This document shows positions 16,173-52,827 of a stretch of 64,000 nucleotides of DNA, one piece after another. A program made the translations under genes and the position numbers. Source of the stretch: Anolis carolinensis (lineage: Eukaryota); NCBI RefSeq assembly GCF_035594765.1, contig NW_026943826.1, positions 13,371,325 to 13,435,324 of the forward strand, in the 5' to 3' direction. The notes under the pieces are model-generated. The model had not been told where the DNA came from and ran no database searches. It was given only the letters and a program-made list of their open reading frames with translations. How positions within the stretch are numbered: the stretch's first letter is position 1; every line of letters begins with the position of its first letter.

Positions 16173-19011
16173 TTATATTCTGTTAATGAAATCAGTTACA
16201 CGTCGGAAATGGATTTGCAGAGTTGGGAATTCCAGGAATGGATTGTGAAAGCCGTGGAATCCGTCCTCGACATGATACCACGTCACTGGGACTCCGTTGT
16301 CCTCCAGTCGCTTCTTGTACAAGAGCCCGTCGTCTCGGAAAACATCGTACTCGCAGGTCAGAATGAAAGTCTTGGGGAGCTGTCGGATCATGTCATCCTC
16401 TGCTAACAGCGGGGAAAACATGGGGTTGGTTGATTCTTTGCATTGTTCGTAAAGTTCTGGGATAAACTGAGGCCACTCCATGGGCACGTAACCCTGGCCC
16501 TTGAATTTTTCCGGGATGAGGTCGGGACTGACCCACTTCTTGTATTTCATCCAGACGTGTTTGGGTAGGTGAGCGTTCCTCATGACACCTTCCACGTTGA
16601 ACTTCTTCCCCGTCAGATACATCATGCCCATCTTCAAGGCCCTTTTCTTGAACAATATGGGGACTCTCTGGTTCTGCTGATATGAAGGCAAGTTGAAATC
16701 GACAGCCTGGAAATAGGGATAGATTAAGACCTGAGCACAAGGCTTTGGGAGATCCGTCCTGGCCGCCAACTGTTGACAAACGACGGTAGCAAATGTCCCT
16801 CCGCTACATTCTCCGTAGAGAGCTATGCGATTCGGGTCCACTCCGAATTCCGCAGCATTTTTCAAGAAGTGTGCGGTAGCCGTGCAGCAATCCATGACTG
16901 GGATCGGGAAGGGATGCTCTGGCGCCAAACGAAACCTGAAGCAGAAGCAAGAAACCGTCTGAATATGTAACTCTACAGGATAACGTTCTCTGGATTTTAG
17001 GATGTTTCCCCCCCTCCATTGTCAGTTTTATATGCTTCACATATTACGGATTACATGGGTAGAAGTTCGGTCAACATCAGGCTAATGGGGGCTAATGGGG
17101 ATGAGGACAGTGAACAGTCTTAAAGGGAAACCCAGCGTAGAATGTGTAGGACCTTGTCATCAATATCTGGTGGAAGCACACCATGGAATCGAGCTGGAAG
17201 TCATAGGAAATGCGTCAAGAGAGACATTCCCTGGAATATCTAGCTCCTCCAGGATGGCCATAGGGTCAACTTGTGGTGGAATCACACCATAGAACCGAGT
17301 TGGAGGAGAGGGAAAAGGCTTAAGGAGAACACACTCCTCCCTGGGTTGGTGGCTCCTCCAATGGGAAGACGGCTAGTTGAGGAATGGATCATGGAGACAA
17401 GTCTCTTGGAAAGGGAATGGATTGAATAGTGTGGGAGAACGTATATCCTATACGACCAGAATGAGGGTGAAGTCACTTACGCAATGTTCACAGTGACGGA
17501 ATCAGTCTCCTGGGAAATGTAGCGGCATAATGAGTCTCCCATCCCTGAAAAACACATCATGTTTCAAGAGAGATTATTACTGATGAGATTCATGACTGTG
17601 TACATAGAAAGATCCTATATACTCCACCCGAACCCTGTTTCCAGGAGAACTTACATATATTTCCGACAATGGCACCACCTGCAGGAATGACAACCACTCC
17701 TCTTCTCATCCCAGAAGGAGTCGTTTTGGGCCAATACACTCTGACCGGAACGCCATCAAAAACAAAGTCCTTGATTGTCAGTGTTGAGCTCCTCTTGGAT
17801 AGCATTAGGCTAGCGGCCCTATCCAAAAATCTATCCTTATTCTGGATGCCAAGTTTTTCTAAAATGAATCCCTGTTTATAGAAAAATATAAAGGTGAAAT
17901 TGATGTCACCAGGACCTGTTGACTTATGCAGCTTGAAAGATAATACATCTCTTGAGTAGAAAATTTAGGAAACGCTGATAAGGAATCACCAGATCAGAAC
18001 AAAGGAAGTATGTATGAAATAACTTGCGTGTCCATGCTTAAAACCTTTGACTATAAAACCCACCGGAGCTGCGTCCTCAGTGTGTGGCACTTGCTCACCC
18101 GAAAGAAGGATTCATTCAACTAAACCTATTGTACCCGATCTCCTCGCTACTTTGTGTCTAAATGGATAGAGAACCTTGGAGTTTCAGGTTGCCTTTTTGG
18201 AAGAGACACCTTGTCTGAAGTTGGGAAGAGCGGGTTCAATGAAGAATAACTCAAGATGCTCAATGGAAGTCCAAGAATGTCCTGATACAAGTCATGGTGG
18301 GATTCCATATCCACGTCAAATTGCTCTTAGTTCTTGTTGAAGGGAAGTCCAAAGAGACCCGTCCCTTCGACTGTTGGTTCCACACTTCCGAGCTCTGCCC
18401 TCACCGCCCACGTGACAGGTCTCTTTTGGACATTTCCTTCCCCAAGAACTAAGGAAAATTCTTCCTGGATATGAAAACCCACCATGTTCTGCACCTTGCC
18501 CTTTTCAGTGGAAGGACTCTGATTCGACAACACACTGCAAATCCCAGGATTCCATAGGGAATATCCATGGTGTCGGAGTGCTCTCACGGTCTCGGAGAGG
18601 ACACAGATCCCTCTAGAAGTTTCCAACTAGAACTAGAACCACTTTGGCAGGCTGGAAATCCAAGCCGAAGCTTCGAAACCATCCGTCTTCATGAGCTGAG
18701 TCAAAGCTGCCCATGCCCTTCAGAAGGCCCTTGTCTTGGTGGGACGCTGAGCGAAAGGAAGCATCCATACGATGACACCGCCAAAACGTGGACACAAAGT
18801 CACATAGAAGGGCATTAAAATCAGGAAGACTTACCATGGCCCCTCCATATCTGAATATGCCGTGCAAAACCCGTAGCCTTACGGGGTATTTGATTCCGGC
18901 GGGAATATCTAGCCTCCTCTGATCCTGATAAAGGGCCCACGCGATCACCAAGAGGAGAACCAGAAGGCTGGCATACAACACAACCATCCCCAGAGAGACA
19001 AGGAAGGCCAT
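16173..19011 (-). CDS. AADACL3/4-like gene D, complete, 406 aa, Cys-nucleophile type. Exons 19011-18835, 17871-17655, 17544-17481, 16935-16173
   Basis: Canonical splice sites and open frame; GECSGG (TGT 16808-16806), EYDVFRDDG, DGFHG; 12-nt shorter exon 4 just after the His. Confidence 0.92.
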
Positions 19012-19090
19012 CCTCTTGACCAACAAGCACGGAAGAACTCTCCTTTCTCCTTGGTGGTTTCTGAGGTTCTGCACACCTTAGGTGTCCCCA

Positions 19091-19110
19091 TTTAATAGGG
19101 AACTAATTAA
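19091..19110 (-). promoter_or_regulatory. Putative TATA-like box (TATTAAA) with adjacent TAATTA, ~80 bp upstream of the gene D ATG; same in C, E, F, H
   Basis: The motif is at a constant distance from the ATG in these exon-1 copies. Confidence 0.4.
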
Positions 19111-19269
19111 GTCATGCCATCCCCTGCCCACACAACCATTCATTGAATCGGAAGTGGCTGATTATGTCCGATGGATGCTGCCCTTACAATTTATACCACG
19201 GTGACCCGTGTGAAGGAATACATTGTTGTGAATGACATGATGGGTTAATCTAGCACAGCGGTTCTTCTG

Positions 19270-20455: not shown

Positions 20456-20518
20456 AATCTTTCTAAATCGTTCTGAAACCCATCAGCAATCTCTCTTGAA
20501 ACATTATGTGTTCATCAG

Positions 20519-20582
20519 ATATGACTGACCAACAATGCTGCTACATTGCCGAAAAAACCAATTCAGTCGTTGTGTGAGTTGG
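20519..20582 (+). pseudogene. Orphan exon-3 copy (in-frame TGA)
   Basis: Homologous to 9244-9307; GTG TGA stop. Confidence 0.8.
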
Positions 20583-21300
20583 GCAAGTTTCTTCCTAGTC
20601 GTCCTGGTTGTATTGGTAAGTTTGTTCTAAAAGCGATGTCCTACCGAGAGCGCTCTCCCACCCAATTCAATCAATTCTGTATACAATAGTTTCCCAGAAT
20701 ACTCGTCCCTTTCTCAGTCAATGATCTTCCTACTGGGGAAACCAACAACCAAAAGGGGCATTCCTCAGCCCAAAGGGCATGACTTGTTTCGATATGCACC
20801 AAGAGGCCCAGAACATTAGTTCTCGAAAAAAATTATTGGTGCAGTTGATTAAATTTCGTGTTGCATTATTCATGGCTGAAGTTAATGTCTAAGGGAAAAT
20901 TATTTGCTGAAGACACTCATTAAAAGAAATACCTTTTAATTAAATGAATGCAAAGGAATGATAAGAGTTGGGTGTCATCTGTATATACGTGGCATCGTAA
21001 TCCAAAACTTCAAGGAAGCTCTCCCAATGGTTCCATCTATATGTTGATAGGATGCGGAATAAAACAGAGCCTCGAGGGAACCCACAGGCCAGATTCAACC
21101 ATTTAAGTTTACCATCTAAGAAGAAACACCCAAGTTAACTCCATATACGATATGCTCTTTAATAATAGTAAAAGAAGCTACTCATGGGGCTATTTACCTC
21201 AAAAAAAGAATCCTACAATCTGACCAGTCAAAACAAAACTAAAATAAAATGTATGGTCCCGATCTCTGCAGTCCCTCATCCATGTTGGAGAAATTATTAC

Positions 21301-21373
<73 letters not shown>

Positions 21374-21374
21374 T

Positions 21375-21964: not shown

Positions 21965-22016
<52 letters not shown>

Positions 22017-22082: not shown

Positions 22083-22087
22083 AATAA

Positions 22088-25973: not shown

Positions 25974-28016
25974 TTATATACTGTTAATGAAATCAGTCAC
26001 ATGTCGTAAATGGATTTTCTGAGTTGGGTATTCCAGGAGCGGAATGCCACTGACAGCCGTTATGCTGTGGAATCCGTCCTCAATGTGATACCACGTCACT
26101 GGGACGCCGTTGTCCTCCAGCCGCTTCTTGTACAAGAGCCCGTCGTCTCGGAAAACATCGTACTCGCAGGTCAGAAGGAAAGTCTTGGGGAGCTGTCGGA
26201 TCATGTCATCCTCTGCCAACAGCGGGGAAAACATGGGGTTGGTTACTTCTTTGCATTGTTCGTAAAGTTCTGGGATAAACTCAGGCCACTCCATGGGCAC
26301 ATAACCCCGGCCCTTGAATCTCTCTGGGATGAGGTCGGGACTGACCCACTTCCTGTATTTCATCCAGACGTGTTTGGGGAGGTGAGCGTTCCTCATGACG
26401 TCCTCCACGTTGAACCTCTTTCCCGTCAAATACAATGTGCCGAGCTGCAAGGCCCTTTTCTTGAACAACATGGGGACTCTCTGGTTCTGCTGATATGAAG
26501 GCAAGTTGAAATCAATGGCCTGGAAATAGGAATAGATTAGGACCTGAGCACAAAGCTTTGGGAGATCCGGCCTGGCCGCCAACTGTTGACAAACGACGGT
26601 AGCAAATGTCCCTCCGCTACATTCTCCCAAGATAGTGATGCGATTCGGGTCCACTCCGAATTCTGCGGCATTTTTCAAGAAGTGCGCGGTAGCCTTGCAG
26701 CAATCCATGACTGGGATCGGGAAGGGATGCTCTGGGGCCAAACGAAACCTGAAGCAGAAGCAAGAAACCGTCTGAATATGTAACTCTACAGGATAACGTT
26801 CTCTGGATTTTAGGATGTTTCCCCCCCTCCATTGTCAGTTTTATATGCTTCACATATTACGGATTACATGGGTACAAGTTCGGTCAACATCAGGCTAATG
26901 GGGGCTAATGGGGTTGAGGACAGTGAACAGTCTTAAAGGGAAACCCATCATAGAATGTGTAGGACCTTGTCATCAATATCTAGTGGAAGCACACCATGGA
27001 ACTGAGTTGGAAATCATAGGAAATGCGTCAAGAAAACCATTCCCTAGAATATCTAGGTCCTCCAGGATGACCATATGGTCAACTTCTTTTGGGAGCACAC
27101 CATGGAACCGAGTTGGAGGAGAGGGAAAAGGCTTAAGGAGAACACACTCCTCCCTGGGTTGGTGGCTCCTCCAATGGGAAGACGGCTAATTGAGGAAGGG
27201 AACACTTCTTTGGAAATATGGAGTCAAGTCTCTTGGAAAGGGAATGGATCGAATAGTGTGGGAGAACGTATATTCTATACAAGCAGAATGAGGGTGAAGT
27301 CACTTACGCAATGTTCACAGTGACGGAATCAGTCTCCTGGGAAATTAAGCGGCATAGTGGTTCTTCTATCCCTGAAAAACACATCATGTTTCAAGAGAGA
27401 TTATTACTGATGGGATTCATGACGGTGTACATAGAAAGATCCTATATACTCCACCTGAACTCTGTTTCCAGGAGAACTTACATATATTTCCGATAATGGC
27501 AGCACCTCCAGGAATGACAACCACTCCTCTTCTCTTCCCAGAAGGAGTCGTTTTGGGCCAATACACTCTGACCGGAACGCCATCAAAATCAAAGTCCTTG
27601 ATCGTCAGTGTTGAGCTCCTCTTGGATAGCATTAGGCTAGCGACCCTGTGCAAGAATCTGTACTTATTCTGGATGCCAAGTTTTTCTAAAATGGATCCCT
27701 GTTTACAGAAAAATATAAAGGTGAAATTAATATCACCAGGACCTGTTGACCTATGCAGCTTGAAAGATAATACATCTCTTGAGTAGAAAATTTAGGAAAC
27801 GCTTTATGCCTCATGGCTACTGCCAATTGCTGATAAGGAGTCACCAGATCAGAACAAAGGGAAAGGGAAGTATGTATGAAATACCTTGTGTGTCCATGGT
27901 TAAAACCTTTGACTATAAAACACCCGGAGCTGCATCCTCAGTGTGTGGCACTTGCCCACCCGACAGAGGGGTTTGTTCCCTACTACCTTTGCCTTCACTT
28001 CACTGGTGCCTCTTTC

Positions 28017-28062
<46 letters not shown>

Positions 28063-29037
28063 CTCACAAAATATCGCATCTGATGTACGTGGATGACCTG
28101 AAGCTGTATGGGAAAACGGAAACTGAAATCCAGTCTCTGACTAACACTGTCCGAATTTTTAGCACTGATATCAGTACAACCACACTACAAACTAGAGCTG
28201 ACAGTTGGCACAACAAAACATTGCATGGAAAGTTCCTTGACAAAATTGAAGGAAAAGCTGATAAGGAGAAGACCTGGCTCTGGCTCACGAATGGGACCCT
28301 GAAGAAGGAGAAACAAGGCCTGATCCTTGCAGCCCAGGAGCAAGCCATCAGAAGAAAGGCAATTAAGGCCAAGATTGAAAAATCAGCTGATGACGCAAAA
28401 TGCAGACTGTGCAAGGAAACCGACGAAACCATGGATCATATCCTCAGCTGCTGTAAGAAAATTGCACAGACAGACTACAAACAGAGGCACAACTATGTGG
28501 CCCAAATGATTCATTGGAACTTATGCCTCAAGTCCCACCTCCCAGCAGCAAAGAACTGGTGGGATCACAAACCTGCAAAAGTATTGGAAAACGAGCACGC
28601 AAAGATACTGTGGGACTTCCGAATCCAGACTGGCAAAGTTCTGGAACACAACACACCAGACCTCACAGTTGTGGAAAAGAAAAAGGTTTGGATCATTGAT
28701 GTTGCCATCCCAGGTGACAGTCGCATTGACGAAAAACAACAGGAAAAACTCAGCCGCTCTCAGGACCTCAAGATTGAACTTCAAAGACTCTGGCAGAAAC
28801 CAGTGCAGGTGGTCCCGGTGGTGATGGGCACACTGGGTGCTGTGCCAAAAGATCTCAGCCGGCATTTGGAAACAATAGGCATTGACAAAATCTTGATCTG
28901 CCAACTGCAAAAGGCCACCCGACTGGGACCTGCACGCATCATCCGAAAATACATCACACAGTCCTAGACACTTGGGAAGTGTTCGACTTGTGGTTTTGTG
29001 AAACGAAATCCAGCATGTCTATCTTGTTTGCTGTGTC

Positions 29038-29076
<39 letters not shown>

Positions 29077-30134
29077 GTTCACATGGGGACCGAGCCCAAG
29101 AATCAACAGATAATCACAATGTCTTATTGGGACACCGATCAGGACCAGCTGCTTACACAGTGCTCTATAGACAGCTGGGATCAGCAACAACGGCAACACG
29201 CATAGGATCCATTCCCTTTCCTCCTGGGCTGGTGTACGGTTCAGACAGAGAACAAGTTCAACTAGCACCCATTCCAGCTGTCCAGATGACCCCAAAACGG
29301 GAGCTCCCAGCAAACCCAAGACATCTCCCAACCTTGTCTGAAGTTGGGAAGAGCGGGTTCAATGAAGAAGAACTCAAGATGCTCAATGGAAGTCCAAGAA
29401 TGTCCTGATACAAGTCATGGTGGGGTTCCATATCCACGTCGAATTGCTCTTAGTTCTTGTTGAAGGGAAGTCCAAAGAGACCCGTCTCTTGGACTGTTCC
29501 TTCCACACTTCCAAGCTCTGCCCTCACCGCCCACGTGATGAGTCTCTTTTGGACGTTTCTTTCAACAAGAACTAAGGCCAATTCGACGTGGATATGAAAA
29601 CCCACCATGTTCTGCACCTTGCCCTTTTCAGTGGAAGGACTCTGATTCGACAATACACTGCAAATCCCAGGATTCCGTAGGAAATGTCCATGGTGTCGGA
29701 GTGCTCTCATGGTCTCGGAGAGGACACAGATCCCTCTAGAAGTTTCCAACTAGAACTAGAACCACTTTGGCAGGCTGGAAATCCAAGCCGAAGCTTCGAA
29801 ACCATCCGTCTTCATGAGCTGAGTCAAAGCTGCCCATGCCCTTCAGAAGGCCCTTGTCTTGGTGGGACGCTGAGCGAAAGGAAGCATCTATCCGATGACA
29901 CCGCCAAAACGTGGACACAAAGTCACAGAAAGGGGCGTTAAAATCAAGAAGACTTACCAGATATGCTCCACATTTGGGAAAGCTGTGCAAAACCCGTAGC
30001 CTTACGGGGTATTTGATTCCCGGGGGAATGTCTAGCCTCCTCTGATCCTGATAAACAACCCACACGATCACCAAGAGGAGAACCAGAAGGCTGGCATACA
30101 ACACAGGCATCCCCAGAGAGACAAGGAAGCCCAT
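25974..30134 (-). CDS. AADACL3/4-like gene E, complete, 410 aa, Cys type. Exons 30134-29958, 27698-27482, 27371-27308, 26748-25974
   Basis: Exons of 177/217/64/775 nt with AG/GT; GECSGG (26621-26619), EYD, DGFHS. Confidence 0.92.
28060..29040 (+). mobile_element. R4/Dong-clade non-LTR retrotransposon, truncated and internally deleted, inserted in (AAT)n in gene E intron 1
   Basis: HLMYVDDLKL (RT), CRLC..H...C zinc knuckle, RHN, PD..D restriction-like endonuclease; (AAT)n on both sides. Confidence 0.88.
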
Positions 30135-31112: not shown

Positions 31113-31174
31113 ATCTTTCTAAATCGTTCTGAAACCCATCAGCAATCTCTCTTGAAACATTATGTATTCATCAG

Positions 31175-31238
31175 ATATGACTGACCAACAATGCTGCTAC
31201 ATTGCCGAGAAAACCAATTCAGTCGTTGTGTGAGTTGG
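31175..31238 (+). pseudogene. Orphan exon-3 copy (in-frame TGA)
   Basis: Homologous to 9244-9307. Confidence 0.8.
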
Positions 31239-32101
31239 GTAAGTTTCTTCCTAGTCATCCTGGTTGTATTGGTAAGTTTGTTCTAAAAGCGATGTCCTAC
31301 CGAGAGCGCTCTCCCACCCAATTCAATCAATTCTGTATACAATAGTTTCCCAGAATACTCGTCCCTTTCTCAGTCAATGATCTTCCTACTGGGGAAACCA
31401 ACAACCAAAAGGGGCATTCCTCAGCCCAAAGGGCATGACTTGTTTCGATATGCACCAAGAGGCCCAGAACACTAGTTCTCGAAAAAAATTATTGGTGCAG
31501 TTGATTAAATTTCCTGTTGCATTATTCATGGCTGAAGTTAATGTCTAAGGGAAAATTATTTGCTGAAGACACTCATTAAAAGAAATACCTTTTAATTAAA
31601 TGAATGCAAAGGAATGATAAGAGTTGGGTGTCATCTGTATATATATATATATATTTATTTATTTATTTATTTACAGTATTTATATTCCGTCCTTCTCACC
31701 CCGAAGGGGACTCATATGCAGATGACACCCAATTCTTATTTAATTAAAAGGCATTTCTTTTAATGAGTGTCTTCAGCAAATAATTTTCCCTTAGACATTA
31801 ACTTCAGCCATGAATAATGCAACGGGAAATTTAATCAACTGCGCTAATAAGTTTTTTGAGAAGCAGTGTTCTGGGCCTCCCGGTGCATATTGAAACAAGT
31901 CATGCCCTTTGGGCTGAGGAACGCCCCATTGGGCTTGTTTGTTTAGCCAGTAGGAAGATCATTGACCGAGAAAGGGACGAGATTTTTGGGAAGCGATTTT
32001 AAAGAGGAATCGATTTAATTCGGTGGGAGAGCGCTCTCGGTAGGACATCGCTTTTAGAACAAACTTACCGATACAACCAGGACGAGTAGGAAGAAACTTA
32101 C

Positions 32102-34027: not shown

Positions 34028-36938
34028 TTATATACTGTTAATGAAATCAGTCACATGTCGTAAATGGATTTTCTGAGTTGGGAATTCCAGGAGCGGAATG
34101 CCAATGACAGCCGTTATGCAGTGGAATCCATCCTCAATGTGATACCAGGTCACTGGGACGCCGTTGTCCTCCAGCCGCTTCTTGTACAAGAGCCCGTCGT
34201 CTCGGAAAACATCGTACTCGCAGGTCAGAATGAAAGTCTTGGGGAGCTGTCGGATCACGTCATCCTCTGCCAACAGCGGGGAAAACATGGGGTTGGTTAC
34301 TTCTTTGCATTGTTCGTAAAGTTCTGGGATAAACTCAGGCCACTCCATGGGCACATAACCCCGGCCCTTGAATCTCTCCGGGATGAGGTCGGGACTGACC
34401 CACTTCCTGTATTTCATCCAGACGTGTTTGGGGAGGTGAGCGTTCCTCATGACGTCCTCCACGTTGATCCTCTTTCCCGTCAAATACACCATGCCCATCC
34501 TCAAGGCCCTTTTCTTGAACAACATGGGGACTCTCTGGTTCTGCTGATACGAAGGCAAGTTGAAATCGATGGCCTGGAAATAGGAATAGATTAGGACCTG
34601 AGCACAAAGCTTTGGGAGATCCGGCCTGGCCGCCAACTGTTGACAAACGACGGTAGCAAATGTCCCTCCGCTACATTCTCCCAAGATAGTGATGCGATTC
34701 GGGTCCACTCCGAATTCTGCGGCATTTTTCAAGAAGTGCGCGGTAGCCGTGCAGCAATCCATGACTGGGATCGGGAAGGGATGCTCTGGGGCCAAACGAA
34801 ACCTGAAGCAGAAGCAAGAAACCGTCTGAATATGTAACTCTACAGGATAACGTTCTCTGGATTTTAGGATGTTTCCCCCCCCTCCACTGTCAGTTTTAGA
34901 TGCTTCACGCGTTGCGGTCAACATCAGGCTAATGGGGGCTAATGGGGTTGAGGACAGTGAACAGTCTTAAAGGGAAACCCATCGTAGAATGTGTAGGACC
35001 TTGTCATCAATATCTAGTGGAAGCACACCATGGAATCGAGCTGGAAGTCATAGGAAATGCGTCAAGAGAGCCATTCCCTGGAATATCTAGATCAGGGGTC
35101 GTCAAACCTTTTCAGTGGAGGGCCGGTTCACGGTCCCTCAGAAGATTGGGGGGCCCGACTATGATGAAATAGTCCAAAATTAGGATTGCTGTGGTTGTTT
35201 GCCTTCAACTCCTTGCAAACTTAGGTCAACCTTTAGTCTAAAGTTTAGGACAGAGACCAGGTAAAGGACCTTGGAGGATCACATCCAGCCCATGGGTCTT
35301 AGTTTGGGGACCCCTGATCTCATAAGACCATAGGTAAGGAAAGGGACCTCCAAAGACCATCTAGACAATCTCATAAGACCATAGGTAAGGAAAGGGACAC
35401 TCAAAGGCCATCTAGATAGTCTCATAGGATGATATGTAAGGAAAGTGACCTCCAAAGACCATCTAGACGATCTCAGAAGACCATAGGTAAGGAAAGGGAC
35501 CTCCAAAGACCATCTAGACAATCTCATAAGACCCTAGGTAAGGAAAGGGACACTCAAAGGCCATCTAGATAGTCTCATAGGATGATATGTAAGGAAAGTG
35601 ACCTCCAAAGACCATCTAGACGATCTCAGAAGACCATAAATAAGCAAAGAGACCCCCAAAGACCAGGTAGACTAAGGTCAACCCTAAGTCTAAAGTTTAG
35701 GATAGGGGCCAGGCAAAGGACCTTGGGGGCCGCATCCGGCCCACGGGCCTTCGTTTGGGGACCCCTGATCTCCAGGATGAGCATATGGTCAACTTCTGGT
35801 GGAAGTACACCATGGAATAGAGTTGGAAGTCATAGGAAATGCGTCAAGAGAGACATTCCCTAGAATATCCAGGTCCTCCAGGATAACAATATGGTCAACT
35901 TCTGGAGGGAGCACACCATGGAACTGAGTTGGAAATCATAGGAAATGCGTCAAGAAAACCATTCCCTAGAATATCTAGGTCCTCCAGGATGACCATATGG
36001 TCAACTTCTTTTGGGAGCACACCATGGAACCGAGTTGGAGGAGAGGGAAAAGGCTTAAGGAGAACACACTCCTCCCTGGGTTGGTGGCTCCTCCAATGGG
36101 AAGACGGCTAATTGAGGAAGGGAACACTTCTTTGGAAATATGGAGTCAAGTCTCTTGGAAAGGGAATGGATCGAATAATGTGGGAGAACGTATATTCTAT
36201 ACAAGCAGAATGAGGGTGAAGTCACTTACGCAATGTTCACAGTGACGGAATCAGTCTCCTGGGAAATTAAGTGGCATAGTGGGTCTCCTTCCCCTGAAAA
36301 ACACATCATGTTTCAAGAGAGATTATTACTGATGGGATTCATGACGGTGTACATAGAAAGATCCTATATACTCCACCTGAACTCTGTTTCCAGGAGAACT
36401 TACATATATTTCCGATAATGGCAGCACCTCCAGGAATGACAACCACTCCTCTTCTCTTCCCAGAAGGAGTCGTTTTGGGCCAATACACTCTGACCGGAAC
36501 GCCATCAAAATCAAAGTCCTTGATCGTCAGTGTTGAGCTCCTCTTGGATAGCATTAGGCTAGCGACCCTGTGCACGAATCTGTACTTATTCTGGATGCCA
36601 AGTTTTTCTAAAAGGAATGCCTGTTTATAGAAAATATAAAGATGAAATTAATATCACCAGGACCTGTTGACCTATGCAGCTTGAAAGATAATACATCTCT
36701 TGAGTAGAAAATTTAGGAAACGCTTTATGCCTCATGGCTACTGCCAATTGCTGATAAGGAGTCACCAGATCAGAACAAAGGGAAAGGGAAGTATGTATGA
36801 AATACCTTGTGTGTCCATGGTTAAAACCTTTGACTATAAAACACCCGGAGCTGCATCCTCAGTGTGTGGCACTTGCCCACCCGACAGAGGGGTTTGTTCC
36901 CTACCTACCTTTGCCTTCACTTCACTGGTGCCTCTTTC

Positions 36939-36987
<49 letters not shown>

Positions 36988-38705
36988 CTCACAAAATATC
37001 GCATCTGATGTACGTGGATGACCTGAAGCTGTATGGGAAAACGGAAACTGAAATCCAGTCTCTGACTAACACTGTCCGAATTTTTAGCACTGATATCAGT
37101 ACAACCACACTAGAAACTAGAGCTGACAGTTGGCACAACAAAACATTGCATGGAAAGTTCCTTGACAAAATTGAAGGAAAAGCTGATAAGGAGAAGACCT
37201 GGCTCTGGCTCACGAATGGGACCCTGAAGAAGGAGACAGAAGGCCTGATCCTTGCAGCCCAGGAAGAAGACATCAGGACAAAGGCAATTAAGGCCAAGAT
37301 CGAAAAATCAGCTGATGACGCAAAATGCAGACTGTGCAAGGAAACCGACGAAACCATGGATCATATCCTCAGCTGCTGTAAGAAAATTGCACAGACAGAC
37401 TACAAACAGAGGCACAACTATGTGGCCCAAATGATTCATTGGAACTTATGCCTCAAGTCCCACCTGCCAGCAGCAAAGAACTGGTGGGATCACAAACCTG
37501 CAAAAGTCTTGGAAAATGAGCACGCAAAGATCCTGTGGGACTTCCGAATCCAGACTGACAAAGTTCTGGAACACAACACACCAGACATCACAGTTGTGGA
37601 AAAGAAAAAGGTTTGGATCATTGATGTTGCCATCCCAGGTGACAGTCGCATAGATGAAAAACAACAGGAAAAACTCAGCCGCTCTCAGGACCTCAAGATG
37701 GAACTTCAAAGACTCTGGCAGAAACCAGTGCAGATGGTCCCAGTGGTGATGGGCACACTGGGTGCCGTGCCAAAAGATCTCAGCCGGCATTTGGAAACAG
37801 AAGGCATTGACAAAATCATGATCTGCCAACTGCAAAAGGCCACCCGACTGGGACCTGCACGCATCATCCGAAAATACATCACACAGTCCTAGACACTTGG
37901 GAAGTGTTCGACTTGTGGTTTTGTGAAACGAAATCCAGCATGTCTATCTTGTTTGCTGTGTCATAATAATAATAATAATAATAATAATAATAGTTCTCAT
38001 GGGGACCGAGCCCAAGAATCAAGAGATAATCACAATGTCTTATTGGGACACCGATGAGGACCAGCTGCTTACACAGTGCTCTATAGACAGCTGGGATCAG
38101 CAACAACGGCAACACGCATAGGATCCATTCCCTTTCCTCCTGGGCTGGTGTACGGTTCAGACAGAGAACAAGTTCAACTAGCACCCATTCCAGCTGTCCA
38201 GATGACCCCAAAACGGGAGCTCCCAGCAAACCCAAGACATCTCCCAACCTTGTCTGAAGTTGGGAAGAGCGGGTTCAATGAAGAATAACTCAAGATGCTC
38301 AATGGAAGTCCAAGAATGTCCTGATACAAGTCATGGTGGGGTTCCATATCCACGTCGAATTGCTCTTAGTTCTTGTTGAAGGGAAGTCCAAAGAGACCCG
38401 TCTCTTGGACTGTTCCTTCCACACTTCCGAGCTCTGCCCTCACCGCCTACATGATGAATCTCTTTTGGACGTTTCCTTCAACAAGAATTAAAGCCAATTC
38501 GACATGCGTTAAAATCAAGAAGACTTACCATGACCCCTCCATATCTGACGATGCCGTGCCAAACTCGTAGCCTTACGGGGTATTTGATTTCAGCGGGAAT
38601 GTGTAGCCTCCTCTGATCCTGATAAATGGCCCACGCGATCACCAAGAAGAGAACCAGAAGGCTGGCATACAACACAACCATCCCCAGAGAGACAAGGAAG
38701 GCCAT
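34028..38705 (-). CDS. AADACL3/4-like gene F, complete, 410 aa, Cys type. Exons 38705-38529, 36620-36404, 36293-36230, 34802-34028
   Basis: Exons of 177/217/64/775 nt with AG/GT; GECSGG (34675-34673), EYD, DGFHC. Confidence 0.92.
35093..35767. mobile_element. Non-autonomous hAT-type element in gene F intron 3
   Basis: CAGGGGTC...GACCCCTG termini; internal ~51-bp repeats; absent from genes D and E. Confidence 0.8.
36985..37965 (+). mobile_element. R4/Dong copy at the paralogous site in gene F intron 1
   Basis: Same junctions and same internal deletion as 28060-29040. Confidence 0.88.
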
Positions 38706-38959: not shown

Positions 38960-40155
38960 CTGCACTTCACTTCGCTTCACTTTATTTCTTAATTAGTCGC
39001 TCTCCACCAGAGTGCTCCGAGCGACTTACAATTTAAAATATCATTCCACAATATAAAAACATTCACATAAAAACATTCAACATAAAAACATTCAACAATG
39101 ACTATTTGGCAAATTAGATCTGATTTACTTAAATTTACAACCAAACCGCCAAGTCTTGAGCGCTTTTACAAAAGGCCGCAACTCCGACATTGCTCTAAGG
39201 TATGGAGGCCATGAGTTCCACAGAATTGGAGCATCGGTCGAAAAGGCTCTACGCCTTGTAGCTTCCAGGTGTACCTCCCTAGGGCCCGGTACGTGTAGGA
39301 GATTTTCCTGGGAGGATCGAGGTGACCACGGATGGAAAAAAGGAATGAGATATAATGGTCCTTGGCCATTTCGAGCTCTAAATGTCAGGACCAGTATCTT
39401 GTTAAAGATCTGATGTTCTATTGGTAACCAATGCAGTTGTTTCAGAATCGGTGTAATATGGGATCTTATAGATGATCCCGCTAGCAGCCTGGCCGCCGCA
39501 TTTTGGACCATTCGGATCTTCTGGGTTTTTGTCTTCGGAAGGCCAGTGTCACAATAATTCAACCTAGTGGTGACTGTTGCATGGATTACCGTTGCCAATG
39601 CTTCTGTCGAAAGGTAAGATGCCAATTTCCTTCCCTGGCGAAGATGAAAAGAGGCCAGTGATCTGGGCCTCCATTGTCAGCGATGAGTCCAACACAACCC
39701 CAAGGCTTTTAACAGTAGCAGACGGAACCAGAACTTCCCCATCGAGATCAGGCAGTGACTGGATTAACTCTGGTGGCTGGCTGGGACAGAGTATCTCAGT
39801 TTTCGCGGGATTCACTTTTAGTCTACGCGCGCGCAGCCAACTCAACACTGCTTCCAAACACAGCTTAAAGTTCTCAGGAATCGTGGTTGTCCCAGGTTCG
39901 AGACGCAAGAGTAGCCGGTATCATCGCATAGCTCTATGCCAAAGCTCCGCACTAGTCCAGCAAGTGGTCGGACGTCGAAACGATCGCACCCTGGGGAATT
40001 CCACAGCAAAGGCAGGAGCTCTCAGAGCTTTGGCCTGACCACTCCACCCTCTGTCTCTGGTCCCGGAGAAACGAATTGAACCATTGAAGAGCTAAACCTG
40101 GTACACCAGACATAGCCAATCGATGGATCAGCAAGTCATGGTCCACGGTGTCAAA
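38960..40155 (-). mobile_element. Paralogous L2 fragment upstream of gene F
   Basis: Same motifs as 19270-20455. Confidence 0.85.
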
Positions 40156-40216
40156 TCTTTCTAAATCGTTCTGAAACCCATCAGCAATCTCTCTTGAAAC
40201 ATTATGTATTCATCAG

Positions 40217-40280
40217 ATATGACTGACCAACAATGCTGCTACATTGCCGAGAAAACCAATTCAGTCGTTGTGTGAGTTGG
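40217..40280 (+). pseudogene. Orphan exon-3 copy (in-frame TGA)
   Basis: Homologous to 9244-9307. Confidence 0.8.
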
Positions 40281-41001
40281 GTAAGTTTCTTCCTAGTCAT
40301 CCTGGTTGTATTGGTAAGTTTGTTCTAAAAGCGATGTCCTACCGAGAGCGCTCTCCCACCCAATTCAATCAATTCTGTATACAATAGTTTCCCAGAATAC
40401 TTGTCCCTTTCTCAGTCAATGACCTTCCTACTGGGGAAACCAACAACCAAAAGGGGCATTCCTCAGCCCAAAGGGCATGACTTGTTTCGATATGCACCAA
40501 GAGGCCCAGAACACTAGTTCTCGAAAAAAATTATTGGTGCAGTTGATTAAATTTCGTGTTGCATTATTCATGGCTGAAGTTAATGTCTAAGGGAAAATTA
40601 TTTGCTGAAGACACTCATTAAAAGAAATACCTTTTAATTAAATGAATGCAAAGGAATGATAAGAGTTGGGTGTCATCTGTATATACGTGGCATCGTAATC
40701 CAAAACTTCAAGGAAGCTCTCCCAATGGTTCCATCTATATGTTGATAGGATGCGGAATAAAACAGAGCCTCGAGGGAACCCACAGGCCAGATTCAACCAT
40801 TTAAGTTTACCATCTAAGAAGAAACACCCAAGTTAACTCCATATACGATATGCTCTTTAATAATAGTGAAAGAAGCGACTCATGGGGCTATTTATCTCAA
40901 AAAAATAATCCTACAATCTGACCAGTCAAAACAAAACTAAAATAAAATGTATTGTCCCAATCTCTGCAGTTTCTCATCTAACTTGGAGAAATTACTATTA
41001 C

Positions 41002-42903: not shown

Positions 42904-43425
42904 GGATCCATTTTAGAAAAACTTGGCATCCAGAATAAGTACAGATTCGTGCACAGGATCGGTAGCTTACTGATATCCAAGTGGAGCTCAACACTGACGA
43001 TCAAGGACTTTGATTTTGATGGCGTTCCGGTCAGAGTGTATTGGCCTAAAACGACTACTTCTGGGAAGAGAAGAGGAGTGGTTGTCATTCCTCCATGTGC
43101 TGCCATTGTCAGAAATATATGTAAGTTCTCCTGGAAACAGGGTTCGGGTGGAGTATATAGGACATTTCTATGTGCACAGTCATGAATCCCATTAGTAATA
43201 ATCTCTCTTGAATCATGATGTGTTTTTCAGGGATAGGAGACCCACTATGCTGCTTAATTTCCCAGGAGACTGATTCTGTCACTGTGAACATTGCGTAAGT
43301 GACTTCACCCTCATTCTGGTCGTATAGAATGTATTGTTAATGTATTTGCGCTGTTACTTTTGTAACATTGTGAGCCGCCCCAAGTCCCCACGGGGAGATG
43401 GTGGCGGGGTATAAATAAAGTTTTA

Positions 43426-43463
<38 letters not shown>

Positions 43464-45430
43464 GAATATACGTTCTCCCACACTATTCGATCCATTCCCT
43501 TTCCAAGAGACAACTCCATGTTTCCAAAGAAGTGTTCCCTTCCTCCATTAGCCGTCTTCCCATTGGAGGAGCCAACAAACAAGGGAGGAGTGTGTTCTCC
43601 TTAAGTCTTTTCCCTCTCCTCCAACTCAGTTCCATGGTGTGCTTCCACCAGAAGTTGACCATATGGTTATCATGGAGGACCTGGATATTCTAGGGATTGT
43701 CTCTCTTGACACATTTCCTATAACTTCCAACTCTATTCCAGGGTGTGCTTCCACCAGAAGTTGACCATATGGTCATCCTGGAGGATCTAGATCAGGGGTC
43801 CCCAAACTAAGGCCCGTGTGCCAGATGCGGCCCCCCAAGGTCCTTTGCCTGGCCTCTGTCCTAAACTTTAGACTTAGGGTTGACCTTAGTCTACCTGGTC
43901 TTTGGAGCTCTCTTTGCTTATCTATGGTCTTATGAGATCGTCTAGATGGTCTTTGGAGGTCACTTTCCTTACCTATCATCCTATGAGACCATCTAGATGG
44001 CCTTTGAGGGTCCCTTTCCTTACCTAGGGTCTTATGAGACCATCTAGATGGTCTTTGGAGGTCACTTTCCTTACCTATGGTCTTATGAGATTGTCTAGAT
44101 GGTCTTTGGAGGTCCCTTTCCTTACCTATGGTCTTATGAGATCAGGGGTCCCCAAACTAAGACCCATGGGCTGGATGTGATCCTCCAAGGTCCTTTACCT
44201 GGTCTCTGTCCTAAACTTTAGACTAAAGGTTGACCTAAGTTTGCAAGGAGTTGAAGGCAAACAACCACAACAATCCTAATTTTGGACTATTTCATCATAG
44301 TCGGGCCCCCCAATCTTCTGAGGGACCGTGAACCGGCCCTCCACTGAAAAGGTTTGAGGACCCCTGATCTAGATATTCCAGGGAATGGCTCTCTTGACGC
44401 ATTTCCTATGACTTCCAGCTCGATTCCATGGTGTGCTTCCACTAGATATTGATGACAAGGTCCTACACATTCTACGATGGGTTTCCCTTTAAGACTGTTC
44501 ACTGTCCTCAACCCCATTAGCCCCCATTAGCCTGATGTTGACCGCAACGCGTGAAGCATCTAAAACTGACAGTGGAGGGGGGGAAACATCCTAAAATCCA
44601 GAGAACGTTATCCTGTAGAGTTACATATTCAGACGGTTTCTTGCTTCTGCTTCAGGTTTCGTTTGGCGCCAGAGCATATCTTCCCGATCCCACTCATGGA
44701 TTGCTGCAAGGCTACCGCACACTTCTTGAAAAATGCAGCGGAATTCGGAGTGGACCCAAATCGCATCACTATCTTGGGAGAATGTAGCGGAGGGACATTT
44801 GCTGCCGTCGTTTGTCAACAGTTGGCGGCCAGGCCGGATCTCCCAAAGCCTTGCGCTCAGGTCCTAATCTATCCCTATTTCCAGGCCATCGATTTCAACT
44901 TGCCTTCGTATCAGCAGAACCAGAGAGTCCCCATGTTGTTCAAGAAACGGGCCTTGAGGATGGGTATGGTGTATCTGACGGGGAAGATGTTCAACGTGGA
45001 GGTCCTCATGAGGAACGCTCACCTCCCCAAACACGTCTGGATGAAATTCAGGAAGTGGGTCAGTCCCGACCTCATCCCGGAGAGATTCAAGGGCCGGGGT
45101 TATGTGCCCATGGAGAGGCCTGAGTTTAGCCCAAAACTTTATGAACAATGCAAAGAAATAACCAACCCCATGTTTTCCCCGCTGTTGGCAGAGGATGACG
45201 TGATCCGACAGCTCCCCAAGACTTTCATTCTGACCTGTGAGTACGATGTTTTCCGAGACGACGGGCTCTTGTACAAGAAGCGGCTGGAGGACAACGGCGT
45301 CCCAGTGACGTGGTATCACATTGAGGACGGATTCCACTGCATAACGGCTGTCAGTGTCATTCCGCTCCTGGAATACCCAACTCAGAAAATCCATTTCCGA
45401 CATGTGACTGATTTCATTAACAGTATATAA
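42904..45430 (+). CDS. AADACL3/4-like gene G, exons 2-4 only (42904-43120, 43231-43294, 44656-45430), Cys type. No adjacent exon 1; possibly a pseudogene
   Basis: Open, correctly phased exons; GECSGG (44783-44785). Upstream intron-1 homology ends near 41700 with no exon 1 or promoter. Confidence 0.8.
43793..44366. mobile_element. Same hAT-type element in gene G intron 3
   Basis: CAGGGGTC TIRs with a perfect 8-bp TSD ATCTAGAT (43785-43792 and 44367-44374). Confidence 0.88.
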
Positions 45431-47210: not shown

Positions 47211-47339
47211 NNNNNNNNNNNNNNNNNNNNNNNNNNNNNNNNNNNNNNNNNNNNNNNNNNNNNNNNNNNNNNNNNNNNNNNNNNNNNNNNNNNNNNNNNN
47301 NNNNNNNNNNNNNNNNNNNNNNNNNNNNNNNNNNNNNNN
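47211..47339. other. Assembly gap (N run)
   Basis: Run of n. Confidence 1.
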
Positions 47340-48338: not shown

Positions 48339-48638
48339 TATGTATGTATATGTGTGTGTGTGTTTATTCATCTTTCAAAAGTACTTTGTAGAAACACAAC
48401 GACATCCCGACTACTGAATTGCGAAGATGTGCCTCTTGGATTCCTTCTCCTGGCAATCTCAGATAAGTTCTTGACAGCAAAAGGAAGCGTGTGTTTTTTA
48501 TTTACCGTAATCAGTCTACTTACTCCATCTATCTAAAGCGGAACTTAGCATTTGGGAAAGCAACAAAGGAGAGAATTTTGCTGGAACGTGACCCTACAGC
48601 CCGAAAAACTCACAGCAAGACAAAATAGAACACGTGTC

Positions 48639-50825
48639 TTATATACTGTTAATGAAATCAGTCACATGTCGGAAATGGATTTTCTGAGTTGGGTATTCCA
48701 GGAGCGGAATGCCAAGCCACACTGTTATGCTGTGGAATCCGTCCTCAATGTGATACCACGTCACCGGGACGCCATTGTCTTCCAGCCGCTTCTTGTACAA
48801 GAGGCAGTCGTCTCGGAAAATTTCGTACTCGCAGGTCAGAAGGAAAGTCTTGGGGAGCTGGCGGATCACGTCATCCTCTGACAACAGCGGGGAAAACATG
48901 GGGTTGGTTAATTCTTTGCATTTTTCATAAATTTCCGGTCTAAACTGAGGCCACTCCATGGGCACATAACCCCGGCCCTTGAATCTTTCCGGGATGAGGT
49001 CGGGACTGACCCACTTCCTGTATTTCATCCAGACATGTTTGGGGAGGTGAGTGTTCCTCATGACACCTTCCACATCGAACTCCTTCCCCGTCAGATACAA
49101 TGTGCCGAGCCGCAAGGCCCGCTTCTTGAACAACATGGGGACCGCGTAGTTCTGCTGATACGAAGGCAAGTTGAAATCGACGGCCTGCAAATAGGGATAG
49201 ATTAAGACCTGAGCGCAAGGCTTTGGGAGATCCGTCCTGGCCGCCAACTGTTGACAAACGACGGTAGCAAATGTCCCTCCGCTACATTCCCCGTAGAGAG
49301 CAATGCGATTTGGGTCCACTCCGTAGTCCGAGGCATTTTTCAAGAAGTGCGCAGTAGCCGTGCAGCAATCCATGACTGGGATCGGGAAGGGATTCTCTGG
49401 AGCCAAACGAAACCTGAAGAAGAAGCAAGAAACCGTCTGAATATGTAACTCTACAGGATAACATTCTCTGGATTTTAGGATGTTTCTCCCCCTCCACTAT
49501 CAGTTTTACATATTTTAGGCTCTGTTTTTGTGTACAGGATTCGGAAGATTCGGGGGATTCGAGGGATTTGTCTGCCGAGTCCATGAAAACGAGCCTGGAG
49601 CGGGGCAGCTGAAGCCTTAGCTGAGATGGATAACAGAAACCATAACAACAACAAGAAGAAGAAGTAGAAGAAGAAGGAGGAGGAGGAGGAGGAGGAGGAG
49701 AAGGAGAAGAACTTGTCCTGGCATAATATGTAAAGGAAAGTGAAAAATCTGCTTTGATTGAAGTCAAAAATCAGAAACTCTTCAACAAGAAGACTGCACT
49801 ACAAACTAGAGCTGACAGCTGGCACAACCTAGCATTGCATGGACAGTCCCTTGGAAAAATTGAAGCTGATAAGGAGAAAATCTGGCAATGGCTCACTAAT
49901 GGAACCCCGAAGAAGGAGACAGAAGGATGAAATCACTTACGCAATTGACACAAGGACGGAATCAGTCTCCTGGGAAATGTAGCGGCATAGTGGGTCAGCC
50001 AACCCTGAAAAACACATCATGTTTCAAGAACGATTATTACTGATGGGATTCATGACTGTGCACATAGAAAGATCCTATATACTCCACCCGAACTCTGTTT
50101 CCAGGAGAACTTACATATATTTCCCATAATGCCACCACCTGAAGGAATGAGAACCACTCCTCTTCTCTTCCCAGAAGGAGTCGTTTTGGGACAATACACT
50201 CTGACCGGAACGCCATCAAAAACAAAATCCTTGATCGTCAGTGTTAAGCTCCACTTGAATATAAATATGCTAGCGGCTCTGTCCAAGAATCTGTACTTAT
50301 TCTGGATGCCAAGTTTTTCTATAATGTATCCCTGTTTACAGAAAAATATAAAGGTGAAATTAATGTCACCAGGAGCTGTTGACCTATGCAGCTTGAAAGA
50401 CAATACATCTCTTGAGTAGAAAATTTAGGAAACGCTTTATGGCTACTGTCAATTGCCCACCCGACAGAGAGATTCATTCAACTAAACCTATTGTACCCAA
50501 TCTCCTTGCCTCTTAATGTCTAAATGGATAGAGACCTTGGAGTTTCGGGTTGCCTTTTTGGAAGGGACACAGCAGTGTGTCTCAACAGATTCACAAACCC
50601 GTCGCGGTGCTTGGATGGGATCCATATGGTCCAAAAGACCGAGACAGTTGTTGGAGCATCACTTCACCTTGTGTGTTGGCAGGGCTACTCTCAGCAAGCC
50701 ATCTGAGTTCCTGGCCATTGTTGGTGCCCCATTCTAATATCAGAAGAAGCATCTCTACAACTGGAAAGAACTAGAGGGCTCAACTCCCTACCTACCTTTG
50801 TCTTCACTTCAATGGTGCCTTTTTC

Positions 50826-50871
<46 letters not shown>

Positions 50872-52827
50872 GTTCACATGGGGACCGAGCCCAAGAATCA
50901 ACAGATAATCACAATGTCTTATTGGGACACCGATCAGGACCAGCTGCTTACACAGTGCTCTATAGACAGCTGGGATCAGCAACAACGGCAACACGCATAG
51001 GATCCATTCCCTTTCCTCCTGGGCTGGTGTACGGTTCAGACAGAGAACAAGTTCAACTAGCACCCATTCCAGCTGTCCAGATGACCCCAAAACGGGAGCT
51101 CCCAGCAAACCCAAGACATCTCCCAACCTTGTCTGAAGTTGGGAAGAGCGGGTTCAATGAAGAAGAACTCAAGATGCTCAATGGAAGTCCAAGAATGTCC
51201 TGATACAAGTCATGGTGGGGTTCCATATCCACGTCGAATTGCTCTTAGTTCTTGTTGAAGGGAAGTCCAAAGAGACCCATTCCGTGGACTCTTTCTTCCA
51301 CACTTCCGAGCTCTGCCCTCACTGCCCACATGACGAGTCTCTTTTGGACATTAATTAAGGCCAATTCGACGTGGATATGAAAACCCACCATGTACTCCAT
51401 CTCCCCCTTTTTAAATGAAAGGACTCTGATTCAACAACAAACTGCCCATCGCAGGATCCCGTCGGACATAGCCATGGTGTCGTAATGATCTCATAGTCTT
51501 GGAGAGGATACAGATCCCTCTAAAAGTTTCCAACCAGCACGTTTTGACTTTGGGAAGAAAGGCTCTCTCTGAAGAGAACGTTAGGAGAGAGCAATTTATT
51601 TATTGATTGATTTATTTATTTGCTACATTTATAATCCGCCCTTCGCACCCCGAAGGGGACTCAGAGCAGCTTACAATTTATATTTACATACGATATTATA
51701 TTATTAGCACAGTACAATACTGGCAATAATTTACTATATTGTACTGTATCAATATATTGTAATATTATTAGTAATATTACATGTAAAATATAATATATAA
51801 TTAATATTATTATATTGTATTATTAGTATTATATCATATTACAAAATAATATTATGAATATTATATGTATATACAATCTATATATATAAAAGAGTGATGG
51901 TATCATGGCGACCCACAAAACAACAAAACTACAGGCCCCCCAACCTCGAAATTTGACAACACAACCCATCATCCACACCTCTAGGTTGATACAACAAAAA
52001 GAAAAGAAAAATAAAGTCCTAATTTGAGAGAGAGGAAAAATTGCTTTTATCCAATTGCTGCCAGTTAGAAGGCTAAGCTCCTCCAACTTGGTCTCCTAGC
52101 AACCCAATAAAAAATAATAAAAAACACTAAAAATTAATACAATAAAATACTATAATAACAGAAAATAACTAAAAATAATACAAGAAAATAATAAAATATA
52201 ATAAATAAAATATAACTTACAATAAAATTAATTTAAAAATGCAAATAACATCAAATAAAAATTACACAACAATTTTTAACCAATACCACCACCACTTTGC
52301 CACAGCTACGTGTGGCCGGGCACAGCTAGTATGTTATAATTATTATATATTATATAATATGATCCCGGAAACAAATGGGTCTGGATTTGGTACAACATGC
52401 CGCCTTGTTTTAACCCCATCCAACTGGGCGCTTCCAAAACTGAGAAGTAGAACCATTTTGGCAGGCTGGAAATCCCAGCCGAAGCTTCGGAACCACGCGT
52501 CCCCATGAGCTGAGTCAAAGCCACCCAATGCCCTTCAGAAGGCCCTTGCCGTGGGGTGACACTGAGCAAAAGGAAATATCCAGATGATGATGCTGCCAAA
52601 ACATGTACAAAATGACACAGAGAAGGGCGTTAAAGATCAAGAAGACTTACCATGGACCCTACAAATTTGAAAAAGACATGCCAAAATCGTAGCTTTCCGG
52701 GGTATTTGATTCCCGGGGGAATGTTTAGCCTCCTCTGATCCCGATAAATGGCCCACGCGATCACCAAGAAGAGAGCGAGAAGGCTTGTATACAACACAGG
52801 CATTCCCAGAGAGGCAAGGGAGGCCAT
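48639..52827 (-). CDS. AADACL3/4-like gene H, complete, 410 aa, Cys type with acid Asp->Glu. Exons 52827-52651, 50331-50115, 50004-49941, 49413-48639
   Basis: Exons of 177/217/64/775 nt with AG/GT; GECSGG (49286-49284), TCEYEIFRDDC, DGFHS. Confidence 0.92.
49700..49927 (+). mobile_element. R4/Dong internal fragment in gene H intron 3, preceded by a compound microsatellite
   Basis: Matches the LQTRADSWHN...KKETEG region of the 28060 element. Confidence 0.7.
51877..52329 (+). mobile_element. Non-autonomous Helitron
   Basis: 5' TC, 3' CTAG, subterminal hairpin GCCAC..GTGGC, inserted between A and T. Confidence 0.75.

Follow-up and report, generated by a model that had tools for sequence, protein, structure and literature searches.

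Natural exchanges of serine for cysteine at the catalytic position are known in a few groups of alpha/beta-hydrolases, and for the HSL/AADAC enzymes we found none. Serine/cysteine pairs of this kind occur among the alpha/beta-hydrolase thioesterases and N-acyltransferases (PMC9825947). In BAAT, the C235S replacement shifts the reaction from transfer toward hydrolysis; CTE-I S232C becomes strongly acylated at 2% activity, and thioesterase II S101C and CALB S105C retain activity (PMC9825947). The closest engineered case to the genes described here is hormone-sensitive lipase S423C, which has no lipase or esterase activity; lipoprotein lipase S132C is also dead, and S. hyicus lipase S369C is dead or nearly so (PMC9825947). 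In the literature covered, drawn mostly from outside subscription papers, we found no account of AADACL genes in Anolis or of a cysteine nucleophile in the HSL family.

An AADACL3/4-like tandem array in Anolis carolinensis

The window, the whole stretch of 64,000 nucleotides that was analysed, contains a tandem array of AADACL3/4-like genes of Anolis carolinensis, and the proteins carry this name in databases. They share 50-60% identity with AADACL4 of squamates, turtle and birds, and in our tree the array genes nest within the squamate AADACL3/4-like genes. The last exons scored 108-128 bits against PF07859 (Abhydrolase_3; curated cut-off 25), the only Pfam family strongly above its cut-off. 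The best structural matches in Foldseek were all HSL esterases (E about 1e-21), indicating an HSL-type alpha/beta-hydrolase fold.

Two genes on the forward strand have serine at the elbow. Gene A, a distant paralogue, has an exon 2 with HGG (634-843) and a last exon at 2920..3672 with GDSIGG (AGC at 3046-3048). Gene B (6448..10876; exons 6448-6624, 7909-8125, 9244-9307 and 10102-10876) is intact, encodes 410 aa with GESSGG (AGT at 10229-10231) and the oxyanion loop ISGGA, and is the nearest serine relative of the cysteine copies inside the window.

Four intact cysteine copies lie on the reverse strand, each with four exons, GT-AG introns, no stops and a product of 406-410 aa; the coding DNA of the copies is 88-95% identical. 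Gene D (16173..19011; exons 19011-18835, 17871-17655, 17544-17481 and 16935-16173; Cys196 TGT at 16806-16808) encodes 406 aa with the loop IPAGG and has a deletion of 4 codons just after His380. Genes E (25974..30134; exons 30134-29958, 27698-27482, 27371-27308 and 26748-25974; Cys196 TGT at 26619-26621) and F (34028..38705; exons 38705-38529, 36620-36404, 36293-36230 and 34802-34028; Cys196 TGT at 34673-34675) each encode 410 aa with the loop IPGGA. Gene H (48639..52827; exons 52827-52651, 50331-50115, 50004-49941 and 49413-48639; Cys196 TGT at 49284-49286) encodes 410 aa with the loop IPSGG and has Glu350 as its acid.

Gene G (42904..45430, forward strand; exons 42904-43120, 43231-43294 and 44656-45430; TGT at 44783-44785; loop IPPCA) is an inverted, 5'-truncated copy. 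It breaks within intron 1 at ~41714, and exon 1 is absent upstream on its strand. It is likely to be a pseudogene, or else a fragment that lacks the anchor. The earlier note ascribed open frames and splice sites to all five cysteine copies; D, E, F and H are complete, and G retains exons 2-4 only. An orphan exon 1 with an open frame and a GT donor, and without exons 2-4 behind it, lies at 13257..13436 on the reverse strand. Two broken exon-1 copies are found on the forward strand (55252..56359), one at 55252 with an in-frame stop and one at about 56243 with its start codon lost. The assembly gap at 47211-47339 is intergenic, with the 3' end of G (45430) on one side and that of H (48639) on the other; it touches no exon, so no reading frame depends on it.

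The nucleophile elbow and the rest of the active site

The G-x-S-x-G serine of the HSL/AADAC family is absent from D-H, where the elbow reads G-E-C-S-G. The earlier note had reported serine codons in A (AGC) and B (AGT) and TGT in all of D-H, and we read the same codons; TGT encodes the cysteine of GECSGG in D, E, F, G and H. Cys196 aligns without gaps with the serine of B and with the position in LAE6 S161A (GDAAGG) at which the catalytic residue was mutated. The AlphaFold prediction for D (pLDDT 89.5) places residue 196 at the turn that links strand 185-195 to helix 197-210. On the alignment and the predicted structure, the cysteine of D-H is in the nucleophile position. A cysteine gene of A. 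sagrei has GECGGG, an elbow without any serine, and we predict that a fluorophosphonate-reactive serine is absent from the cysteine copies. An assembly or haplotype artefact is excluded by the divergence of the copies, by the same base in other runs and by the same codon in A. sagrei. Serine in the reads, which the earlier note had considered, was not seen at H, where contigs from other runs show the identical cysteine base.

His380 and Asp350 (Glu in H) are kept in all 16 clade members. The earlier note had the histidine and acid retained, which is correct, except that the acid of H is glutamate, not aspartate; glutamate is a known catalytic acid in EstD11. The HGGG oxyanion motif of the HSL/AADAC family is replaced in the cysteine copies by PAGG, PGGA, PPCA or PSGG, and HGG is altered in every copy, B included. 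The oxyanion amide donors are the third and fourth motif residues (PMC7905190). All intact copies have the third-position glycine, Gly124, which G has lost, and D, E, F and H retain the amide positions at Gly124, residue 125 and residue 197. His122 is also missing from serine genes of Anolis, Sceloporus and Pogona, which excludes its loss as a partner change specific to cysteine. Variable sites cluster in the cap, oxyanion-loop and post-His segments.

The reading frames of D, E, F and H begin with an N-terminal hydrophobic anchor (hydropathy 2.2-2.8; helix 2-33 in the D model), which is absent in G. Exon 1 is missing from the RefSeq models now available for D, F and H, and the spliced RNA contig of H continues into intron 1, so the full-length anchored product stays a prediction.

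Serine-cysteine history, expression and selection in anoles

The earlier note had proposed that one A>T change preceded the amplification. Inside the window this fits, as D-H form a single clade sharing TGT (support 100/100). The paralogues of A. sagrei, however, are a mixture of TGT, AGT and TCT, cysteine genes as one clade are rejected (p-AU 0.009), and serine was regained at least twice through two codon routes. A single origin of cysteine without reversal is therefore ruled out by the tree and the topology test. Two histories are equally short, and in one of them cysteine was gained twice. A pair of A. sagrei genes with TCT serine adjoins a TGT gene, and AGT, TGT and TCT are nested on one branch. 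On these codons the pair is best read as the end of a series AGT>TGT>TCT, and the cysteine intermediate survives in a paralogue 83% identical. Paralogues differing in serine or cysteine are 63-83% alike, with swaps in both directions. For the A. sagrei gene P0011 we saw no sign that its TGT came by conversion from cysteine paralogues, its flanks being B-like; gene conversion, including short tracts, could nevertheless inflate the count of A/T flips.

Among the 16 genes, site 196 is only serine or cysteine despite 4 changes; if neutral, the probability that all further changes would be between these two residues is about 0.003-0.01. Serine-cysteine exchanges also exceed the neutral count (about 0.5 expected; P(>=3) 0.01-0.02). 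A search for homologues with the elbow alone gave only 9 candidates and was uninformative. Cysteine at the nucleophile was not found outside Anolis: all non-Anolis AADACL3/4-like matches examined have serine, and distant relatives without serine have G, D, N, E, R or A (cysteine in 0 of 160 domains).

The earlier note had made its proposal depend on expression and non-neutral dN/dS, and both were found, the first for H and the second for exon 4. In one spliced RNA contig (run X5), exons 2, 3 and 4 of H are joined with the Cys196 TGT unchanged, and 4 of the 5 listed coding differences are synonymous. In the cysteine copies, exon 4 shows purifying selection (omega 0.45; LRT p=1.7e-5), looser than in the serine controls (0.17). 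Exons 1-3 gave omega 1.2-1.6, not different from 1, with no significant positive selection; synonymous divergence is also raised in exon 1, which fits mosaic exchange. The three A. sagrei cysteine genes had omega 0.84, again not different from 1. Substitutions tend to spare the conserved columns, both in exon 4 (p=4e-7) and in exons 2-3 (p=0.008). Along the cysteine branches G194, G198, G199, R353, D354 and H380 are unchanged, where neutral evolution would give about 10.8 changes (rough p 2e-5). Retention of the cysteine by itself is not significant (P0 about 0.2-0.4).

Readings of the cysteine copies and comparison with known systems

From sequence and modelled structure we propose, with moderate confidence, that D, E, F and H encode active lipid enzymes of the Cys-His-acid type, which pass through a thioester intermediate and are plausibly biased toward transfer. 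They are predicted to be membrane-anchored enzymes of the HSL/AADAC fold with the triad Cys196-His380-Asp/Glu350. His380 would activate the thiol of Cys196, whose attack on a lipid ester or on an acyl thioester would leave the enzyme acylated as a thioester. As water would release the acyl group slowly, its transfer to an alcohol or amine of a lipid would gain the advantage. Variable pocket residues may tune the substrates among copies. The flips in anoles suggest that either residue is a usable nucleophile. Within this explanation, we judge a transfer bias about as likely as a hydrolase whose rate or substrate has changed. Speaking for the explanation are the unchanged active-site residues, the constraint on exon 4, the restriction of site 196 to serine and cysteine, the lack of cysteine among distant relatives that lost serine, the GECGGG elbow and the natural serine/cysteine pairs of other families; against it weigh the dead S423C and S132C lipases, the looser constraint than in the serine controls and the non-significant retention of cysteine by itself. 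The setting is likely skin or gland lipid, by analogy with bird and mammal relatives only. More tentatively, and with a rather low probability, the Anolis genes may be cysteine enzymes within vertebrate HSL/AADAC in which the flips are a selected switch between hydrolysing lipids and transferring acyl groups, with the AGT>TGT>TCT series having passed through a working cysteine enzyme.

Alternatively, cysteine may be a weakened state: a slow hydrolase fixed in redundant tandem copies and amplified, where dosage may compensate, with serine restored by selection when the mutation arises. The dead or nearly dead S423C, S132C and S369C lipases agree with this, as do an omega raised across the whole anole clade and the serine reversions, of which there were at least 2 where neutrality predicts 0.3-0.4 (P 0.03-0.07). 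A return to serine may mean that serine works better. We nevertheless consider it somewhat unlikely: TGT was kept in 5/5 window copies through the radiation and is common to A. sagrei, cysteine was gained twice in one of the two shortest histories, and constraint persists on the catalytic exon.

It is less probable still that the copies are non-catalytic lipid binders or covalent acyl holders, with fold and pocket kept and the cysteine perhaps acylated without turnover. CTE-I S232C offers a precedent for such acylation, and the altered HGG motif and the clustering of variation around the cap, oxyanion loop and post-His segment would suit a binder. The loss of His122 is, however, shared with serine genes, the amide donors include the Gly124 found in all intact copies, and a binder would need neither the histidine and acid nor a return to serine. 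Young decaying pseudogenes, or N-terminally truncated products only, are very unlikely. The truncation of G, the three orphan or broken exon-1 copies, the short RefSeq models and an omega near or above 1 in exons 1-3 point that way; against this stand four intact genes free of frameshifts and stops, the omega below 1 in exon 4, and the spliced RNA of H with its mostly synonymous differences. That Ser197, directly after the cysteine, is the true nucleophile of a serine hydrolase by a register shift, as in GCSAG of the PMGL2 esterase, is ruled out for practical purposes by the ungapped match of the catalytic serine to Cys196, the position of Ser197 at the helix start in the D model, Glu instead of Gly at -2 from it, and the A. 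sagrei GECGGG elbow.

If the genes are active cysteine enzymes, these near-twin paralogues would allow a test of whether a one-atom swap alters the chemistry, and one could ask with them which second-site changes allow a working thiol and whether a lipase can become a transacylase. AADACL3/4, skin-linked and little studied, may gain a first biochemical handle.

The array resembles AADACL3/AADACL4 (PF07859, HSL family) in its four-exon build, predicted N-terminal anchor, acid and histidine motifs and HSL fold, and differs in the cysteine nucleophile and in P-x-G in place of HGG. BAAT, compared with the ACOT acyl-CoA thioesterases, is a model for how the anole copies may work, being a vertebrate lipid enzyme with a Cys-His-acid triad and relatives with serine; it belongs to another family, and we claim no homology. 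The serine/cysteine split is stable there, whereas it flips among anole paralogues that are 80-90% alike. The GxCxG thioesterase domains, dienelactone hydrolase and PHA synthase likewise have cysteine at the elbow and a thioester intermediate, in families unrelated to the array. Congopain C25S and the Plasmodium SERA proteins are, like the array, multigene families in which many copies have the other nucleophile, but they have the papain fold and changed in the opposite direction, and we did not find a TCN/AGY codon trace cited for them. Brenner (1988), on 'two serines', reportedly argued that an active-site serine switching between AGY and TCN needs a cysteine or threonine intermediate or a double change. 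Such switches are mostly inferred over deep divergences, whereas in anoles AGT, TGT and TCT are nested and the cysteine intermediate is still extant. The AGT>TGT>TCT series would be a recent example, open to testing, in which the codon class of an active-site serine changed via cysteine.

Family membership and gene structure

Arylacetamide deacetylase-like 3/4 proteins of Anolis carolinensis matched the last exon of copy G with identity up to 100%, and seven of seven last exons far exceeded the Pfam Abhydrolase_3 cut-off. The predicted structure of D (P0005, pLDDT 89.5) matched HSL-family esterases. An N-terminal anchor is encoded in D, E, F and H. Database searches used single exons or protein ids as queries; spliced models were joined for translation, trees and dN/dS only. 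The Cys copies D, E, F, G and H are AADACL3/4 members by descent. They have neither the nucleophilic Ser nor the HGGG motif that serve as criteria of the HSL/AADAC family and are thus a variant within AADACL3/4, not serine hydrolases as defined.

As read from the DNA, the facts on these copies are firm and directly testable. Entries for their proteins already exist under routine names, and a search of literature covering few subscription journals found no paper noting a Cys nucleophile or Ser-Cys flips in AADACL3/4-like proteins. Another A. carolinensis GECSGG protein (P0003) is encoded outside the window. The UniRef model P0002, which joins exons 1-3 of the Ser gene B to a G-like exon 4 ~35 kb away, is probably a chimeric annotation.

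The open frames and splice sites claimed in the earlier note were found in D, E, F and H (four exons, 406-410 aa, GT-AG introns, no stops). G is an inverted duplicate without exon 1, whose breakpoint lies inside intron 1. Current RefSeq models place the start of D, F and H downstream of exon 1. An assembly gap (47211-47339) is intergenic. L008, a distant Ser paralog outside the window (another A. carolinensis assembly, 300-base flanks), served as a control. Intron 1 holds non-LTR retrotransposon fragments with AAT microsatellites in both E (27876-28967) and F (36864-37892), on the forward strand; they were copied along with the genes. Upstream of each minus-strand exon 1, in opposite orientation, is a B-like exon-3 region (13656-14261, 20457-21079, 31113-31643 and 40155-40777, forward strand), so the repeat unit contains a piece of a B-like gene. 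E exon 1 (29958-30134) differs from that of F by ~16% at nonsynonymous and ~13% at synonymous sites, against 2.3% in shared non-coding DNA, and looks as if swapped in from another copy. By eye, a 1107 aa ORF with reverse transcriptase, RNase H and integrase-like motifs (60646-63969, minus strand) was judged to be a Gypsy-type LTR retrotransposon pol.

The nucleophile codon and its history

All five claimed TGT codons were present (D 16806, E 26619, F 34673, G 44783, H 49284), as was Ser in A (AGC) and B (AGT). The Cys occupies the nucleophile site (residue 196): it aligned, ungapped, with the position changed in LAE6 S161A, and the D model places it in the strand-turn-helix elbow. The catalytic His380 is invariant, as had been claimed; D-G have Asp350 as the acid, and H has Glu350, with G356C beside it. 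Four residues after His380 are missing in D. Pro226 is invariant in alignment A1, from which E and F were left out, and is Ser in exon 4 of both.

In a tree built without the nucleophile codon, D-H grouped as a clade whose sister is an expansion in A. sagrei, and B was sister to three A. sagrei genes. In all, A. sagrei has at least 10 copies in a separate expansion (CM073882.1, ~13.06-13.38 Mb), which also varies at nucleophile-1 (Ile, Gln or Asp) and nucleophile+1 (Gly). Among the A. sagrei nucleophile codons, TGT occurs in four genes (two with GECSGG, one with GICSGG, one with GECGGG), TCT in two and AGT in four. The earlier note's single A>T change before amplification oversimplifies this history: D-H form a clade sharing TGT, but one clade of all Cys genes was rejected (p-AU 0.009).

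The TCT codons (L009:10697-10699 in P0008 and L010:13361-13363 in P0009) have TGT in the nearest paralog and AGY in the outgroups. These two genes nest next to P0011, a TGT gene (support 100/99); joining them to B was rejected (p-AU 0.0003). By single-base changes the simplest route is AGT>TGT>TCT; a double substitution may instead have occurred. The shortest histories took 4-5 steps. In one, Cys was gained twice and reverted twice; in the other it was gained once, ahead of B's divergence, and reverted three times. A single reversion may account for all four AGT genes (p-AU 0.14). Every step was Ser-Cys. Under neutrality this had p ~0.003-0.01 once the first gain was allowed for, and ~0.5 Ser-Cys exchanges were expected versus at least 3 seen; both figures are rough because they are based on 58 fourfold sites and take no account of short conversion tracts. 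No Cys was found at the nucleophile among the non-Anolis matches listed (two homology searches, best 120 of ~1,200 in each), nor in any of 160 domains from a Cys-weighted profile search (50%-identity representatives), where lost serines had become G, D, N, E, R or A.

Constraint and transcription

Lack of expression together with neutral dN/dS had been named in the earlier note as contrary evidence. The codon model gave omega 0.45 for D-H exon 4 (p=1.7e-5 vs 1), compared with 0.42 in B-like genes and 0.17 in outside Ser controls. Omega did not differ from 1 in D-H exon 1 (1.17) and exons 2-3 (1.61), or in three A. sagrei Cys genes (0.84). In exon 4 (p=4e-7) and exons 2-3 (p=0.008), amino-acid changes avoided the columns that other reptiles conserve; no avoidance was seen in exon 1. 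The most variable sites (~55-79, 123-134, 254-269, 384-388) lie in segments that build the cap and pocket in this family. Core constraint on the Cys copies is real though looser, and the pocket is diversifying. That the copies are decaying is accordingly improbable, the neutral-like omega of exons 1-3 notwithstanding.

In run X5 (presumed RNA, tissue coded), one 1428-base contig spans H exons 2, 3 and 4, both introns having been spliced out at canonical ends. It differs from H at nine positions, none A>T, the change that Ser at 49286 would need, so spliced H carries Cys; reads showing Ser, the other contrary outcome named earlier, were thus not what this contig gave for H. Four of five listed coding differences are synonymous. 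The DNA-like X1 and X15 contigs had no A>T versus H, and the X8 contig had one, its place not listed. The X5 contig continues unspliced into intron 1 (50332-50500); the RNA was either incompletely spliced or begun at an internal site.

Predicted chemistry and comparison with known enzymes

We predict, at about even chances, that the Cys copies are active Cys enzymes, whose Cys-His-acid triad would form an acyl-thioester. A skin-lipid role is suggested by analogy with relatives: AADACL4B is found in soft epidermis of chicken (PMC8742010), meibomian lipid genes include AADACL4 (PMC6769918), and AADACL3, which is restricted to skin, has been lost in pangolins and whales (PMC10277264).

The HGG motif is rewritten (D PAGG, E and F PGGA, G PPCA, H PSGG, B SGGA). 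In other iguanians, Ser genes have replaced its His122 too, and Gly124 is lost in G only among the copies. The HSL esterase EstD11 draws its oxyanion amides from motif residues three and four and from nucleophile+1 (PMC7905190); none of the copies D, E, F and H has Pro at a corresponding position.

Natural Ser/Cys pairs occur among alpha/beta-hydrolase thioesterases, N-acyltransferases and dienelactone hydrolases (PMC9825947). Engineered Ser-to-Cys changes had mixed outcomes (PMC9825947 supplement): HSL S423C and LPL S132C were dead, CTE-I S232C was slow and strongly acylated, and thioesterase II S101C and CALB S105C were active. Weakened hydrolases are a distinctly less probable reading of the Cys copies than active Cys enzymes, and binders a less probable one again; a shift of the nucleophile to Ser197 is very improbable. 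In Ser-to-Cys thioesterases the rate is limited by deacylation, and BAAT C235S gained hydrolysis and lost transfer (PMC9825947 and supplement).
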